The position numbers were made by a program, and so were the translations under genes. Under the pieces are notes generated by a model. The model ran no database searches. It was not told the DNA's origin and saw nothing but the letters and a program-made list of their open reading frames with translations. A stretch of 63,706 nt of DNA, counting the filler, from Pelomyxa schiedti (taxonomy: Eukaryota; Protista; Evosea): assembly GCA_020536535.1 (NCBI GenBank). It is 6 parts of 6 records of this genome, joined end to end, with 100 filler letters (N's around TTAATTAATTAA, not from the genome) between each part and the next. Parts side by side here need not be neighbours in the genome. Positions count along the whole stretch, not along the records: positions 1 to 10,117 come from JAHLWZ010001276.1; 5 more parts are not named here. One strand, given 5' to 3'. Each line of letters begins with the position of its first letter. The stretch's first letter is position 1. Positions 1 through 9,918 of the stretch are shown here, one piece after another.

Positions 1-1727
1 TCGAAATCCCTATTTGTGGAATGAGTAATAGAAAAATAAGGCAAGTTTTACTACAGATATTGCAAGCACTAAAAGTGGCTGATATACCAACACTGTGGGT
101 CTCTAGTGATGGGTGGAATAAAGGAGCCTGTGACAATCTAATGGACCCACTGGTGCAAGCATTGCAGCAACCATTAGAATTCGTCGAGGATGTTTCTCAC
201 ATGGAGAAGCTCTTCCGGAATTACTTGCTAAATTACTTCATCAGAAAAGGAGAGAAGGGAGAGGTTTTTACAATGCGGTCTTTGCATATTGTGAGAGCAG
301 CAAACAAAGAAGCTTTTCTTGCAGAAAAGTGTACATCTTATGATATCCTTTTCCCTAGTGACCGCCAAGGCTCACATGAGATTGAGCTGATATACAAGAT
401 TTTATACCTCTTTCAGGAAAAAGCCTGTGCCTCTGAGTCTTTCTTAGCGATAGAGTATTTCAGTCACATGAGTAATCTGCACAACCTTTTTGTGCGGACT
501 CATGATCCTGTAAAAGAGCGCATTTGTGAATTCCACAAAGTTTTAGATTATTTTGAGGGGTTGACAATTACCAAAGTTTCCCAGGATAACCTCAAAGTAA
601 CCTAGCAGAAATTCTGCACAACTGCTGTGTGGAAACAATTAAGAATCTCAATTGATGGGTTTGAAAGACTTGCCAAAATTCTGGAGACTAAGTACTCAAT
701 TGTCCTATATGATTTGAAGCCATTGTCAACTCTGGCATTGGAGAATCACTTCAGTGGTATACGAAGAAAAATGAAGCGTTTTTCTGTTCGTGAATATCTT
801 TACACTTCACAATGAATGCAGATTGTCCAAGCACTGGCTCATTGCAAAGACAGCAACTTTCCAACACCAAGACACAACAGTAAGAATTATGCTGATAATA
901 CAAGCATACAACGAACTGTTATGGAGGTTGAGAAGGCATACAATCCTCCAAGCCATGGTCACAGGGCTATTCGGCAGAGTGTTTCCAATCAAGATGTCAA
1001 TGAATGTATGAAGTTGTGTCAGCAGTATTCTCTGGAAAATAGGAAAACTACACGCCAGCTTTATCATTCAGATAACAGCTGCTCTGGGGAACTGTTTTTC
1101 TGTCCTTGTGCCATTGACCCATATCTGTCCCCACACTGTGGAAGGATTGAGCCTTACAAAGCAAAACAATGTTATGATACTCACATGGCAATGCTCCATC
1201 CAAAGTTGAGAATTGATCCAGAGTTGAGAATTGAAGAGTCTCAGGAAATACCAGTAGAACCACCTAAAAAGAAAGCAAGAAGTTCACCAAAGGCACAGTG
1301 CAACGAATGTAAACCACCAAAAGGTGAGAAGAAGCTCTTTGCTCATTTTTTAACATATATAAATAGTATTCATATATATGGGCCGCCTAAAAACACACAT
1401 GGAGTCTGAACATCACAAACTGTTCTCCTACCCACCCCCAGCAGACCACTCATGGAGTTACATTGAGCTTGAGGGTCGATTGGCACTGACGGAACAACAC
1501 ACAACAAGCCTCTCTTACACTAGTGGAGCCACATTTCCCAACACGCAACCCTCTACAACCAGCCAAACGCCACCCAACCGCCGCACGGCTCGCCATCACC
1601 AGTGATTGGTTTTCTGTTTTGTTGGTGTTTGTTGATCAAACATGTGAAAAAGGTATCGAAGCTCCTGATGGAACGTTGGAAAACCAAAATGGGAGTAATA
1701 AAGGAAAAAGATATAGTGAGGGGTCCG
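1..1727 (+). mobile_element. Right part of a P-superfamily (THAP9/P-like) DNA transposon; left end lies outside the window
   Basis: Carries a transposase frame. Ends in AGTGAGGGGTCCG (1715-1727). The preceding ~50 bp align with the right end of the TSD-flanked element at 56025-56532. Confidence 0.75.
3..1409 (+). pseudogene. P-element-like DDE transposase interrupted by two in-frame stops (TAG 603-605, TGA 813-815)
   Basis: ORFs 21-605, 627-815 and 816-1409 share one frame, which is open back to the window start. Motifs: SSDGW (D at 108), DVSHMEKLFRNYL (D-x2-H-x2-K-x2-RN, 189), ALENHFSGIR (E at 741). Cys/His-rich C-terminus; no introns needed. Confidence 0.75.
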
Positions 1728-1791
1728 CGTAAAACTGGTGTTTTGAAGGAGGGTACACGCTCACGTTAAATGTTGAACAGATGGAGTCGAA

Positions 1792-4700
1792 TTAAAAGAG
1801 GCCAAACCCTTCACAGTTGGAGATGGCGAGGAGAAGACGTTCCCGTAGTTTCTCTTTTGAGGAGTACTCGGGAATAAGGAGGTAATTGAAGCATGTGCGC
1901 GCTGTGGGGAGGCTGTTGGTGTCTGGTCCTTCGCGTTGAATTACGAGTTCCATGGACTGTAGGCCACCAATAGGGACACGGTCACTGCCTGTTGTGAACG
2001 CAAGGAATTTCCGGCGGAGGTCAGTGGGAAGCTCTGACAATATTTCCCATAACCATCTGCATGCACTTCAATTCAATTTTCCTAACAAGGTCACATACTG
2101 GATGAGCTTGTGGGATTCACTGTAGCCACCGTCGTATGTTACTTTTTGTCGTAGGAGCAGCAAATCAACGTCATCAGATATTTCACCACACACAAGAGTT
2201 TCCAATTCTTCTGCACGAAATAGGGACAGGGCTGGACCACAGAAGGAGTCATTGGAGCCGCAGACTGCCGCAAAACCTTCCGAGAAAGCTTTGAACTGCT
2301 GCTGAATAGATTTGCGGCACATGAAATCAACATACAGTGCAACATATTCTGCAGAAAATAAGCAAGCTAATAGCACCTGGCTTGCAGACCTTTCCTGTTA
2401 TCCTCTGTGACGAAAATAAGGTCTCCATTCTCTTTCAAGTTAAACTTCGTTTCTTTCCCATACCTCTGTTGGAAAGTAAACTTTGTGCAGTTTTAAAGAA
2501 CCATACAATCAAGGACACTTCAAATGTAAGTCCAAAAGTTTCCTTGAAGTTATCCCCATCATATTTAAGCATTGCTCTGAGACTGCGGACAACAGTCTGC
2601 AAGAACGTGAGTACACCCTTAGCCATAGATACATGTTACTGGGTAAATCTCTTCCATTAGATCTAACGTGGGAGGTTCCCCTTTAAGCATTTTGTATATA
2701 AGCTAGATTGAAATGTTAGACGTGTCTAAGCCACTCTAAATACCAATGGAAAACGGACGTTTATAACAATTCTATTAAACGCAGCCAAACCCATGATCTA
2801 TGATCAGTTGTTAGCTCAATTCCGTAGAGATAAATAATACTTACTACACCAATTAGGCGATATTCATCAAAGGATTCGAGAGAAGCGTGATGGAACCACA
2901 AGTGAGTCCGCGGTTCTGATGGAACAAACATGCCAAAATTCACATCGAAAAGTGTCCGACACACAAGTTGAAAAAATTCCTTGGCTACTCCTCCTTCATC
3001 AAGACCTTGTTCACCAACAAAGGCCACCTTCATAGGCTTTCGCAAAGTGTGTTTGTTCTCTGGCTTGTGTCTTATTATTTGAGGAAAGGATCAAAGTGGA
3101 GAACCTTCAAGAGCTCCTTTAACTGCACAAGAGTATCTTGTAGTAAATTGCTTCGATTGACAGCAAGGGTGAAGAAAGGTTGTCCTACTTGCTAGGAGGT
3201 ATGAGAGAGGAAAATTGAAAAGGGTGGCAGCTTAGACCTTCATGGCAGATTCGAAGTAAAAGAATGTACTTTTAACAGTCGCATCTAAAATAAATGGATA
3301 GTTCAAAAAGCTGAAAACGCTTTTAGAGGTACTGGTAGGGTTTGGTTAATGAGGAAGTCAAGGATAATGGGCATACAGCCAAGAGTGATAGGCCTGAGGA
3401 ATATCAATAGTGCTCACGTGGAGGGAGTAAAATTGTTTGTAAGAAATTATGTGGCTTGTTTCATTTGCAATATCTGTAAAACATAATTCAGAAGAAAACT
3501 ACAAGGTGAATTCCATGTTTTACATAGTTCCTCGAGAACTCGTAAAGTATTCCAGTGTTGATCAGCAGTTGTTTGGATTTGTAGAAGATTAACAAGTAAT
3601 TTTACGAGACGGGAAAAATTCTCAGGTGGATATCTATATTGGTGTGACCTAATCACAAAACTTGGAAGGGCACACTGGCTCCACCAATTTCTGAGAACAA
3701 TTCTCATATCAGTATGCAGCCCACTAATACCGCGACAAAGTCTGTCCAAGAGGGGACGAATTTCTTCCGGATTAGTGTCCAACTCGTGCATAAGGGGATT
3801 TTCAAATAGTATTAAATACACTCGCAGTGCATCCGGAGTTGTAGTGTGTGGAGGGTGAGTAATGGCTGTTGACGTGGTGAGTACTTTCATCGCTGACAAC
3901 AAACATTTTTTCACGAGTGGCTTTGCAAATGTAAGAGTAATAGAAAATCAGAAAATATTAACCTCCTCGCTGAGAAGAGAATATGCCTTCTGAAGTGATA
4001 TTATATCTATGCCCGAGTGCATGAGACCCGTTTCATAATGGTCACCCTAAATGAGTGATGAACTAACAAAACCGCAGATTTGTTTAATGCAACTTACAGT
4101 CAGAAAGCTTGCATTAAGGGAGGAAGCAGAAGAAAAAATGTCGGTAACAGCTTGACACAAATCCGCTATTGGTTTTCCGGATTCCGATAGCTTATTAGTA
4201 GGTTAATTTCCACTACTATTACTGTAGAAGTACCCGACTGATTGCTGCTAGGTCAATGAATGGCTGTGAGATAGGTCTGAGATGCACTGGATAAATTTTA
4301 GTTGTACGGTGCAATGAACAAAACAAACTCTCGTTCAGGGTTTCAGCATTCCCCACAATAAATGTATGTTCTGTGCCACAGGAAATGTTGCTCGCAGTCT
4401 TCATAATGCCTCGTAGTGATTGGATCTGACAGGGATTTTCCTTTATAACGAAATCACCAGTACCCAACTGAGCACAAGAGTTGGCCCCCCAGCTCATGAA
4501 CTCCATGCAAGTACTATTTTCACGGACTCGGGCACACACAGTATGTGAACGACCAGAGCCCAAAGCTACAACAATATCACCTCTTAATTGTTCCACAACA
4601 CGAGGTATGACTTCGTTTTCTCGGTGACCATGGCCCAGCTTGCAGATAGAAGTTAGAGGAAAGAAACAACATTCTGGAGGCTACTTGTCCTTGTGAGCCT

Positions 4701-5791
4701 TTAAAAAGTGAGAAAACGTTATGTACTGATGTTATTATGAGGGTGAAAAAAACACCCACCAGCTCCAAAAGAGTACAGACTGCCAGTCACTGCAAAAAGA
4801 TTGAAATAAGAAAAGAATTAAAAAAAAGTAGGAGGAAAAAAAAATAATACCAGATAATGCTAATGTGTGAAATGCTCCACAGGCCACTGAACAAATCCTT
4901 TTTCCTCGCAAATAAGGATTTACCACCACTCCTTTTTTTGGAACATCATCACCTAATCCAAGCTGTCCAAACTAAATAAAATAATATTAGAATGAAAAGA
5001 AAAAGTTGGATGCGGGACACCTGATTTGAACCCCAGCAGAAGACACTACCTGAGACTGAAGACAATTCTTAGTCAATTGACCAAAAATGAGATACAAAAA
5101 CACACCTGAAACACATATGGAATGAGAATCACCAGTGGCACATTTGTGAATAGGGACTCCTACCAGTGCATCTATTGCCAGGGGGAAACATGATGAGGTT
5201 TGATCTTTCCCCAACTAAAATATTCCTTAGGGGATCTTTCTTAATGAATAAGAGAGTGATTACTTGACCAGACAATCCACTGCCCCAAGAAAAGAGTTCA
5301 CCTTTTCCTAGAAATATAAGACTCATATAAGATGATTGTCTGGTTGGAACTATATACTCGATAAAGCAAGGCAATGCTCCCTGCCACAGCAAACGTCGAT
5401 AATGAAGCTTCCTTTGAGTGAACGTGCCATTTTTGGTTTTGAGCTTGACACAAAATCTCCAGTGCCCAGTTGTCCGTGGTTGTTCTTACCCTATCACCGG
5501 GCAGACTTAGGGGTTCTGCTTAGTCTGGAGACTGAAGGGGCATACCCAAGCATAAACATCGCCAAGAGAGGTCACACAGGCGGTGTGTGCTTCTCCACAT
5601 GCAACAGATGCAATCACCAGGGATTCAAGGCTTGTAACAACCACGAAACTCATTTGCCTCCCAGTGCGTCCAAGTTGACCCTGTCTTTCAATTGGGACTT
5701 TATGAGTATAACCACAACAGAGTAAAAGAGTGAAGCAAAACGGTGGGATAGTTGCAAACTCGTTATTGCCACATGTGAAAAGTGCACCCAT
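1792..5791 (-). CDS. HERC-type E3 ubiquitin ligase (RCC1 repeats + HECT), multi-exon
   Basis: RCC1 repeats (VACGEAHT, GQLG, VACGAFHT). HECT motifs FVGEQGLDEGGVAKEFF, FTTGSDRVP, LPTARTCFNYL and C-terminal GFGLF. Confidence 0.92.
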
Positions 5792-6275
5792 TGAATCCAC
5801 AATCGCGGAGTGTTGCGCGCCACACGCGATCTACTCCATGTCAAAAACAAGATCTCGTTGTTGAGGCACCAAGCAAGCAATACACAGATCTGTTGGACTC
5901 ACCTTCTTTGGTGATGGTGCGTGCACAAGTGTGGGGTTTCTGATTTTATCGTCTTCTGTGCCACCAAGACCCAGCTGTAATTATGTCAAACCACAGCAGG
6001 GCATTAATGCCTCACAGAGAGGGGAAAAAACAAAACAAAAAATCGCCCGACCTGCCCGTAAAAATTGGATCCTAAAACGAGTAAAAAACATGGACGAGAA
6101 CAAAAAAAAGCACACCGAATCCGCACACAATGTCGGCCATTGTCGGTTATACAGTTAGAAAAGACTTAGACTTTTAGACCAGCTGCCTTTTCTAATAACA
6201 TCAGAGGGCCAATCGTTTCGTAAACCGGTAACTTAATTTAATTAAAAAAAAAAAAAGAGACATTGATTCGACATC

Positions 6276-9200
6276 ATGGCAGATCCGCTGATACAACAAG
6301 TAGTGTCGCAGTTGGCAGCAATGCACACGCAAACTGAGGGCAATTTTCCTGCTCAAAAGGCTGCCATAGCGTGCGTGATGCCCAACAAAAAACAACATCT
6401 ACACCTTGTCTTTGTGATTCACCTGTTTTGGTTCACTTCCTGGTACCTTGACCATAATTTTCAAATAGATGGGTTCAGGGGTTCCAAAACAAACCTGAGG
6501 CGTGGATGGTTTCAGACCAACTTCTCAGGACAAGCTTTCCTACCCGCGAGTATAGATTACACCTTAAGATTCCATTTCTTTACATTTGTGTAGCTCGGAG
6601 ATCCACCATTTCGCAGCAACCACATTACACACAAAAATACGGCGTGATTTTAAGGACCTTCCCAGAGAAGCTCACGCATCTCTGAGGGATTCGCTTCTCA
6701 GCCACATGATGAGGTTGAAGAATCACTTGTACCGTGAACTTGTGACGTTCTATAGGTATAAAGCAGATCAACTGTGGGTCTTAGAAAAAGTGTGCATGTG
6801 TATTGCAGCACTGTCCATCCGCATGGAGGGCTGGCCTGACCCAGTAAAGGACATCATTGCAACCTATGGTATCATATCCAATGGCGTCCACCTATCCCTC
6901 AAAGACGCTAGGTCGCCCAGAAACCATTATGCCTCTGATGGCACTGCTTGCAGTTCTCCCAGAAGAGTGTCATAGAGATAAGGAAAACCTAGAAAGAGTC
7001 AAGAGACGAGCATTTGAGGATCAACTCAACGCTAACGCCGAATCTGTTCTCCAAACTACATATGCCGCCTTGACACATTCAGGAAGTAACACAAAAATCC
7101 AAGAAGCAGTATGTGAACTGGGGGGAGATTACACATAAAAGAGATACGATTTTTCGAATTCAGGTTTTCAGATGCTTTGTGAGCTGGCTTCGACATGCAA
7201 AGATATCACCACTACTGCTAGTGAATAATCCTCTTGTTGTGGCCTCTTTCGATGCACTCCAGTGTCCGGACTTAGTTGAAACTGTGGTTGATGCCATTTG
7301 CGAGCTGATTAGGATAAATCCCACTGTTCTGACTCAAAAGGCTAAGCAACGAAACAGAAAGGAAGGGATTGTGAAGTTCAACACTGGCCGGTGTGAGAAG
7401 CACTACAGCAACGACTGTTCGAAACTCAAACACCACTAGATCTTCCCTAGAGACCAGGCAGAGCCAGGAACAACTTGTTCAACTCATATTTACCAAAGTA
7501 CTCCCATTGAAAGCAAAGTATTATAGAGAGTGCACATCCCTTCAATTCTCATTTTCCTTACAGGTACACTGAAGCTGTTGCAAATGACAATTGGACTCTT
7601 TCCCATGGAATATGTAGAATTTTTACAGAGCTTGCTGAAACCAATATTCCAATTTTTGAACAGGTATTTAGATTCTTTTGTTGTTATATTTTCTAACGAT
7701 TTATAATGTCCCACAGTTTGGAATAGAGGCACAAACAATATGTGCTACTCTTCTTGAATGCACAACACACCCGGATCCAGGGATATTCATTCTCACACTA
7801 AACTTCTGGCAGTCACTTGCCACTTCTCTTTTAACAATCCCAGAGGTGTCTTTCTCCCTGTTAACGCATATTACTGTTATCTGTGCACTTACTTTCTTGA
7901 AGGATAAGAAAACCCCCACTATGACTGCATATTCAGCAATTTTTGCCACCCTAGCCCAAATTGTAATGAAACACATGCTAATTCCATCTGGCTTTGAGCA
8001 GTGGGCAGCAGATGCCCAAGATGAGTTTAAAACCCTCAGGCAGTAAGTATCATGGAGAAACTCGATTTGAAGTCTTATCCGAGTGCAGTGAGGAGTTGAC
8101 CCCAACTTTGAGGTCGGCTTCGGCAATTGCTGGTCATGAGGAACTACTTGTCAAAATTCACTCTGATCTAGTTGTTTACTTGGGACAGTACCCACAGACC
8201 CAAGAATGGAAACCTATTGAAGCACTACTGTATGCAGTAAGGTCCATTGACCGTAACGTGGAGGACTCCGCAATTTTCCCCCAGGAAATTTCGTTTTTTA
8301 GTGCTGCTTTTCATGACACTTGGCTTGTAGGTATTGGCGCTTGTTAGAACTGTACCTGATGTACCCCTTGTGCAATATACAAGTTTACTTGTTGTTAGCC
8401 GTTTCTGTGAATGGCTGCAGTCACATCCCACTCTCTTATCCCCTTTGCTTGATTATGTTATATCAAAGTGTGTATGACTAGCTTCAGGGAATACCAAACT
8501 CTTATTTCCTTTTAGGATATCCGTACCCGATCTTGCGCCAGCAGCAGCGTTTTCCTTCAGGAACTTGTGTGACACATGTGCTACCCATCTCTGTACTTGC
8601 ATGGACTCCATCTTCCTCGTTATTGAGGCGTCAGCCAAGTTCAACCTCGAAATCAACGAACAGAAGGTTGTACCGCACTTTTCTGTATTTACTGATGCCG
8701 TTCTGCAGGATATTCTAGTCGGAGTTAGTTACGTAATCTCCGCCCTACAATCACCTCAACTGGTTGAAGCATTGCAACGGCTATGCCTACCAGTAGCCCA
8801 AGCCCTTCAGAATTTTGCCGTTGCACCGGTTGCCTCAAGTGCAGACACAAATGGCCTGTCAGATACCTTGTACAAGCTGGGAACAATTTTTCGGCATGTA
8901 AAACCACCTCAAGACTCTTCTCCGTGTTACATCGTTTTTGAAAAGGTACCTACCTATTTGCGAAAGTCAATATTAACTTTCGTTCAAAACCAAGATGTGG
9001 CCATTAATTGACCAGCTGTTTACTAAATACAACACCACTGATACTGTTGCACGAGCTCTGTGTAGTTGCTGCAAAGACGTCATCAGTACATGTGCCCACA
9101 ATATCCTGCCACTTCTTCCCACAATTTTTGATCGCCTTGTAACCGTTTTGGACTTGACTCGTAACACAGTACCAATGGCTGTTTTGCACAGCTGTATCAA

Positions 9201-9918
9201 AAAACTCCCTCCAGATTGCCTTCCTTCTGCATCTTCAACACTCACACAACTATACACAACTACACTTACGCGAGTCACGCAACGTGTCATGAGTCTCCTC
9301 CCCAACTCTGACGAATTCACACTCCACCCCGACATCGTGTGCAATTACTTCCTGTTAACACATCAATTCATCACCGACTGCCCCCATACACTCTGCTCCT
9401 GCGCCCCCTTACTGACCTCACTTTTATCTTGGTCAATGATGGGGCTACAACTTCAAGAACATGAGGGTGCAAAATCCCTCCTTCGATTCTATGAAGGATT
9501 ATTCGTGGCAGCACGAAAGATGCCATCATTCTTCTCAACACTGCAATCAATACTGGAGACAACACTTCCAAACAATGCACTCCCCATTGGACCTACACTT
9601 GTACAGGGATTGCTGCTCGCTGCAGCAGGCTGGCAGCCAATGAGCCAAATACCAATGCTGTGTGACATATTCATAGCCATGCGGGCTGCCAGTGTGCAGA
9701 TGTTTGTCTCAATGCTGCAGCGCGCATTGGTCAACTTCCCACTGGCCACCGTATCACAACAAACCAAGCAAGACTTGGCCACCTCCCTTAGTGTACAACC
9801 ACTCAAAGAAACCAACATGCGGCATGTACTAGAGGACTGGTACCAAGTCTGCACACACCCACAACCAGCACAACAAGTATCCCTCGTCGTCCCCCCCACT
9901 ACCTCCATGAGTTCCTAG
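6276..9918 (+). CDS. TNPO3: Transportin-3/Mtr10-like importin-beta (transportin-SR), multi-exon
   Basis: N-terminal importin-beta motifs (EAWMVSDQLL, FAATTLHTKIRRDF, SLRDSLL), LAVLPEE, long HEAT-repeat body. Importin-13 is not fully excluded. Confidence 0.8.

Follow-up and report, generated by a model that had tools for sequence, protein, structure and literature searches.

We analysed a 63,706-nucleotide (nt) stretch of DNA from the protist Pelomyxa schiedti (assembly GCA_020536535.1), called here the window, in which six parts of six genome records are joined with filler between them and whose first 10,117 positions come from record JAHLWZ010001276.1 (contig C1276). The locus studied lies at the start of the window, where a transposase remnant is followed by the end of a transposon. 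Our results suggested that positions 1 to 1727 (+ strand) are very probably the broken right-hand part, the 3' ~55%, of a dead copy of a ~3.2-kb cut-and-paste DNA transposon of the P-element/THAP9 superfamily. The left side of this decayed copy is cut by the contig start; since the window begins at base 1 of contig C1276, the upstream part is missing through assembly and not through biology. Contig C4216, which overlaps window positions 1 to 37, extends the copy upstream; the first catalytic Asp of the copy lies on C4216, which itself carries a TAG codon.

Translation of positions 3 to 1736 reproduced, in a single frame, the three motifs that an earlier note on this DNA had reported, SSDGW, DVSHMEKLFRN (DVSHMEKLFRNYL) and ALENHFSGIR, with two stop codons interrupting the frame. 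The exon 1 part of the remnant (3 to 1323, + strand, as are the features that follow) corresponds approximately to residues 402 to 839 of the intact transposase encoded by the full-length element C1812 (L002), and has 86% amino-acid identity to that intact open reading frame (ORF). Of the catalytic residues, this part contains the second Asp and the Glu, together with the DxxHxxKxxRN motif and the insertion domain. The Asp codon of SSDGW (108 to 110) corresponds to D437 in the intact protein and to D303 in the Drosophila P transposase, and its column is nearly invariant in a 40-sequence alignment. The D-x2-H-x2-K-x2-RN motif (189 to 221) aligned to DTPHLIKLVRN of the Drosophila P structure 6p5a, and the Glu codon of ALENHF (741 to 743), the counterpart of E649 in the intact protein and of E531 in Drosophila P, to VEHFFG of the same structure. 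Exon 1 of the window copy has zero frameshifts and two nonsense codons that disable it, a TAG at 603 to 605, where the intact copy has Gln, and a TGA at 813 to 815, where it has Arg. Because of these two stop codons, the production of transposase from this copy is impossible.

The motifs of the reading frame proposed previously (3 to 1409) were thus recovered, but not its end. The coding sequence leaves exon 1 at a 43-nt GT..AG intron (1324 to 1366, + strand), and joins a last exon (1367 to 1605, + strand, ending in the TGA at 1603 to 1605) that is open and conserved both in the window copy and in the intact copy. The GT and the AG are present at the window sites 1324 and 1366, and the homologous intron of the full-length element (L002 2772-2814) is spliced out in an RNA contig (X3 record 14). 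Since this intron is spliced and the following exon is open and conserved, the frame end at 1409 is the result of reading through the intron. Moreover, the last exon completes a second CCHH-like motif (CNEC, from window position 1299, ...H..H). The intact transposase of the family is predicted to have ~916 amino acids once its single 43-nt intron is removed. Note that the homology and fold analyses used the 840-amino-acid ORF of C1812, the two exons being handled separately.

At its right end, the window copy terminates in ...AGTGAGGGGTCCG at position 1727, followed by CGTAAAAC. The right terminal inverted repeat (1699 to 1727, - strand) is imperfect and ~29 nt long, was identified as the inverted repeat of the full-length element and by an alignment of nine ends, and contains an exact match to the terminal core, CGGACCCCTCACT, in the minus-strand reading of C1276:1715-1727. 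The adjacent CGTAAAAC (1728 to 1735, unstranded) is the presumed right copy of an 8-bp target-site duplication, its length being taken from five perfect duplications found elsewhere. The matching left junction was sought in two ways. A genome pattern search for CGTAAAAC followed by the end core, in which at most 2 mismatches were tolerated, gave 13 matches, none of which was a real element end with that flank, and the left end was not reached either by tracing upstream along L090, a Logan contig from RNA that matches the window copy and C4216 exactly except for a 3-nt difference at window 293-295. The left inverted repeat and duplication that the earlier note had wished to see upstream were therefore not recovered for this copy. 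With the left end beyond the contig and not located by either search, CGTAAAAC stays a predicted duplication, and the copy, with its right end kept and its left end unrecoverable, is a relic. The first ~125 nt of L090 match a different multi-copy sequence (C682:8052-8183, C231:4401-4532 and C1732:3461-3549, all in the genome G000), and this upstream sequence is present in 3 to 4 diverged copies, each of more than 2 kb. The switch is either the truncation point of the window copy or the mark of a chimeric or spliced contig.

The complete element was found on contig C1812 (3169 bp), which contains it whole, from inverted end to inverted end, with an uninterrupted 840-codon frame. C1812 begins with CGGGCCCCCCTCACTA and ends in the reverse complement of CGGACCCCCCTCACTA, and its 29-nt arms are 83% complementary. 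The identity of the window copy is 84% with bases 1458-3163 of this element and 96% with a copy on contig C1129 that is rearranged; judging from the sequences, the window copy is a member of an older, decayed subfamily. DNA matching window positions 1 to 1735 recurred in the same genome on 8 or more further contigs, which disposes of the possibility, left open before, that the sequence has no other copies; C1812 is the intact one. The ends of the family are ~29-nt imperfect inverted repeats beginning CGG(G/A)CCCC..TCACT, with a 13-15-nt end core conserved across families. The terminal core, CGGRCCCC(0-2 nt)TCACT, occurred 45 times in the genome, compared to 12 times for the reversed control pattern. 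The recurrence on at least 8 contigs and the excess of terminal cores mean that the observed sequence is not there by chance, and the CGG(A/G)CCCC ends described earlier are confirmed by these 45 termini and by the inverted repeat that opens and closes C1812.

The predicted 8-bp length of the target duplication was also borne out for the family, by 5 perfect cases and one case matching at 7/8 positions. In four perfect cases both ends lie in one contig (GTTCTTTA, ACAATCAA, ACTTCAAG and AGAACAAG); in the fifth, across two contig ends, CTCAGGAT flanks the full-length element, closing C883 and opening C1628. Ends 100% identical to those of C1812 abut at least 2 left and at least 5 right contig breaks. 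These identical ends at several breaks indicate that several identical copies exist and were collapsed in the assembly. Near-identical full-length copies, an open frame and the presence of the sequence in RNA libraries suggest that the C1812 subfamily is probably still active. A 192-nt piece of the element (L002 443-634) also matched, at 99% or more, a contig from a 'bee metagenome' run of another study, which hints that the organism or a close relative may occur in bee-associated samples.

Two small families, of 286 bp and of ~500-680 bp, have only the terminal ~15-30 nt in common with the autonomous elements. Since these short elements (286-680 bp) share only their ends with the autonomous element, they are non-autonomous derivatives. 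Copies lie at L033 1501-1786 (C1145), L027 1501-2180 (C792), L028 1501-2008 (C376), L062 1151-1774 (C101), L075 1501-1999 (C733) and L085 123-755 (C2183), and most are flanked by perfect 8-bp duplications, the C2183 copy having none. The genome also contains a second intact P-type family, G000:C470:7098-10607 (- strand; L054), of 3510 bp, with an 845-codon open frame and the same terminal core. The C470 transposase is 44% identical in amino acids to that of C1812 over the aligned part and scores 20.6 bits against PF21787, below the 24.6 cut-off; the flanks of the C470 element agree at only 5/8 positions.

The placement of the element in the P superfamily is supported by a deep profile, by the predicted fold, by the 8-bp duplication and by the ~30-nt inverted ends. 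A full HMMER scan with the intact 840-amino-acid ORF retrieved 47 relatives at E≤1e-3 (best full-length match, 3.9e-23), with phmmer matches to the relatives spanning up to ~600 residues; phmmer with the single protein against the PDB gave nothing useful. An alignment of 40 sequences, comprising the intact transposase and 39 relatives, contained nearly invariant columns at D437, H461, D464, H467, K470, R473, P519 and D521. The Pfam model PF21787 (TNP-like_RNaseH_N) was present in 29 of the 39 aligned relatives, and three that were checked (P0002, P0004 and P0007) scored 35-45 bits, above its gathering score, and matched PF21787 only. Moreover, the 40-sequence profile matched the Drosophila P transposase (6p5a_A) at E 1.4e-11. 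In this alignment FD(E/G) falls on D230, SSDG on D303 and (V/L)ENFF on E531 (VENFFS vs VEHFFG), the residues whose roles are described for Drosophila P (PMC7776569), so that the catalytic triad of the intact protein consists of D324, D437 and E649. The clade also keeps the column of (V/L)ENFFS, and DxxHLxKxxRN of the profile aligns with DTPHLIKLVRN of 6p5a_A. An independent embedding search listed only P/THAP9-type clusters. An 8-bp duplication and ~30-nt inverted ends are properties of P elements (PMC3698922, PMC7776569), and the 29-nt arms found here lie within the 13-31 nt of known members of the superfamily.

The predicted structure agreed with this placement. An AlphaFold model built on the alignment (predicted local distance difference test, pLDDT, 77; predicted template modelling score, pTM, 0.70) had as its top Foldseek matches the two P transposase chains 6pe2_A and 6p5a_A (E 1.4e-12, template modelling score, TM, 0.70-0.72). 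VIA-align superposed model residues 189-713 on the P transposase with Z 20.2 and a root-mean-square deviation (rmsd) of 3.7, aligning 401 of 442 residues, while the next fold reached Z 9.6; the solved P fold (helix-turn-helix, split RNase H, helical insertion domain) was matched by the model including the helix-turn-helix and the insertion domain. Another superfamily that makes 8-bp duplications had to be considered here, since the RNase H fold of hAT elements likewise contains an insertion domain, these elements also have a C/DxxH motif, and the hAT transposase Hermes was in the Foldseek list at E 7e-4. The Hermes match, however, had a TM of only 0.16-0.24 and an rmsd of 12.8, far from the values obtained with the P transposase, and no hAT dimerisation or other hAT Pfam family was present in the intact protein or in the 39 relatives. 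In addition, hAT ends usually start with YARNG, and the ends of this element do not. That the element belongs to hAT is thus extremely improbable, and we rejected this candidate on fold and domains. The transitive Pfam evidence, the profile match to 6p5a with its three catalytic residues and the dominant structural match together uphold the identification as a P-superfamily transposase.

In the predicted layout, a small N-terminal domain containing Cys would be followed by a long coiled coil and then by a helix-turn-helix. Next would come the RNase H-like core (D324, D437, E649), interrupted by a helical insertion domain, and C2H2-type fingers would lie at the C-terminus. In the VIA-align superposition, the insertion domain falls on the GTP-binding domain of P. 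The predicted helix at residues 149-186 matches coiled coils only, with weak coiled-coil Pfam matches at 147-200, and its modelled position, between the N-terminal domain and the helix-turn-helix, fits that of the P leucine zipper. The extra Cys/His module proposed for the C-terminus is real: it is kept across the clade as a C2H2-type finger, its profile region matching C2H2 fingers of the PDB with E values of 5e-4 to 6e-3. In the window, this zinc-finger-like module (C..C..H..H) occupies 1101 to 1199 (+ strand), after the 'LTIRE..CK' motif, and is conserved in the clade.

Several observations weigh against membership in the P superfamily. A Pfam scan of the three ORF pieces of the window and of the intact ORF at E≤10, in which the P-transposase models PF21787/88/89, PF12017 and PF12596 were looked for, found no P, THAP or THAP9 family, and a word-based search for protein homologues gave zero matches. 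No THAP domain (PF05485) was found by Pfam scan in the intact protein or in its 39 relatives. The conserved N-terminal pattern, C51-x-G53 ... (C/H) ... R113-C114-x2-C117, does not follow the THAP order C-x2-4-C..C-x2-H, and a separate model of residues 1-200, in which a small domain is confidently predicted (pLDDT 83-92 for residues 51-100), had no THAP or other clear match in the PDB, the search being dominated by the long helix 149-186. The THAP domain that had been expected upstream was therefore not found in the intact protein, in the 39 relatives or by the N-terminal fold search; the modelled small domain is best described as one for which a match was not found, rather than as a new fold. 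The GTP-binding domain model (PF21788) matched 0 of the 39 relatives. The published GTP-contact residues of P are D528, K385, K400, V401, S409, F443, D444 and N447, and these contacts are not visibly kept in a hidden Markov model alignment at 14% identity, where, for example, D528 is aligned with Leu, D444 with Asn and N447 with Val. Finally, the ends start with CGG, while the Drosophila P end starts with CA.

Most of these points would also be expected if the clade were a separate, unnamed lineage at the superfamily level, with a common ancestor with P elements and with no THAP, no use of GTP and different ends: the intact protein is blank in Pfam, its relatives match only the N-terminal RNase H model and never the GTP-binding or C-terminal models, and the conserved C-terminal fingers accompany the CGG ends and the lack of a THAP domain. 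We consider this improbable, since 401 of 442 residues of the P transposase, those of the helix-turn-helix and insertion domains among them, fall within the structural match, the lengths of the target duplication and of the inverted repeats agree with P, and the relatives exceed the Pfam threshold for the TNP-like domain. The direct profile test suggested by the earlier note was blank with Pfam, but the deeper profile and the fold comparison overturn this blank, and the element adds a divergent new member to a superfamily already known; it is not a new kind of system. P-like elements have already been reported from protists, as stated in a passage of PMC3698922 that cites Kapitonov and Jurka 2009.

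In this element the domains (coiled coil, helix-turn-helix, RNase H core, helical insertion domain) follow one another as in the Drosophila melanogaster P transposase (6P5A/6PE2), and the two systems also have in common an equivalent of the DDE triad (D230/D303/E531) with the DxxHLxKxxRN and VExFF motifs, an 8-bp duplication and inverted ends of ~30 nt (PMC7776569, PMC3698922). In contrast, the identity is only 13-14%, no THAP domain was detected here and the GTP contacts are not visibly kept; this element has additional conserved C-terminal C2H2-type fingers, CGG ends, and a single 43-nt intron instead of three. By analogy with the Drosophila P transposase, an oligomer would bind the ~29-nt CGG(G/A)CCCC..TCACT inverted ends, and the transposase would cut the element out and integrate it at a break staggered by 8 bp; an 8-bp duplication is what we observed. 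Transposition in the P superfamily is characterised by dependence on GTP and by 17-nt staggered donor cuts. THAP9 and the zebrafish P-like elements (Pdre) belong to the same transposase superfamily, and the neighbours in the embedding search include THAP9 clusters; 8-bp duplications and internally deleted derivatives are known on this side (PMC7776569). Unlike THAP9, the present element and its clade have no detected THAP, GTP-binding-domain or C-terminal Pfam domains. The most similar proteins were uncharacterised metagenomic and eukaryotic TNP-like_RNaseH_N proteins (P0002-P0047), which in the 40-sequence alignment are 19-25% identical to the intact transposase and have in common with it the SSDG, DYxHLxKxxRN, PSDK, VENFFS and 'LTIRE..CK + C2H2' motifs. 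Eight of the 39 relatives (P0002, P0004 and six others) add an RNase_T-type 3'-5' exonuclease domain after the C2H2 finger, which is absent here.

Two host genes follow the transposon in this part of the window: a HERC-like ubiquitin ligase gene with RCC1 repeats and a HECT domain (1795-5898, - strand), and an importin-13/transportin-3-like gene (6267-9915, + strand). The right end of the transposon lies 64 nt past the stop codon of the HERC-like gene. ORF overlaps and in-frame GT..AG candidates suggest, for these host genes, exon lengths of ~200-900 nt and intron lengths of ~42-70 nt.

Contigs from RNA libraries of the same study contained at least 13 joints, in which the skipped segments, of 40-69 nt, are bounded by CT..AC along the transposase strand and so by GT..AG (GC..AG in one case) along its complement. 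These joints were seen in both the active and the old subfamily, and the contigs from DNA runs were collinear. In the window they correspond to three minus-strand segments: 10 to 54 (GT..AG; L090 matches 1-9 and 55-227 exactly; homologous to L002 1467-1511), 228 to 271 (44 nt; L002 1685-1728) and 355 to 407 (53 nt, boundary ambiguous by 2-3 nt; L002 1812-1864). L090 thus skips the same sites as the active subfamily, where further opposite-strand segments lie at L002 396-439, 663-702, 749-792, 881-922, 1109/1135-1177, 1305-1348, 1965-2028, 2085-2133 and 2192-2257. No long ORF was found in the spliced opposite-strand RNA. The sister family C470 keeps CT..AC at only 1 of 12 homologous positions, and a crude filter for intron-like sequences, applied to both transposase ORFs, picked out 9-10 opposite-strand loci and no sense-strand locus, compared to 6.3-9.0 +/- 2.2 loci in shuffled sequences. 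With 1 of 12 sites kept and a density within that of the shuffles, we rejected the possibility that the opposite-strand introns are a selected feature; their density appears to be an effect of base composition. In our reading, the joints are cryptic splicing events in antisense or read-through RNA of an A-rich coding strand, and at the window locus this RNA plausibly starts in the neighbouring minus-strand gene.

A sequence that adjoins a host gene and is represented in contigs from RNA runs could also be a domesticated transposase gene that serves the host. For the window sequence this has only the slightest probability: it has two in-frame stops, the terminal inverted repeat at its end is intact, several copies exist that have diverged and been rearranged, and splicing of the RNA takes place on the strand opposite the transposase. 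In a broader proposal, the clade might form a branch of the P superfamily that lacks THAP and possibly does not depend on GTP, and in which the CGG..TCACT ends would be recognised via a new N-terminal Cys domain together with the C-terminal C2H2 fingers. Separately, the densely spliced opposite-strand RNA might be a regulated input for the silencing of the transposon, and not splicing noise. Taken as a whole, we regard this proposal as rather unlikely.

Our results therefore describe, besides the relic in the window, a complete and apparently live P-type transposon from a protist, with an intact gene, defined ends, a target duplication and small non-autonomous partners. Pfam-blank ORFs that carry the DxxHxxKxxRN and ENxF motifs can be placed by comparing profiles and folds. 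Since this lineage is too divergent for standard domain scans, it could serve in comparisons of which features of P elements are universal, including THAP tethering, the GTP cofactor and the sequence of the ends.

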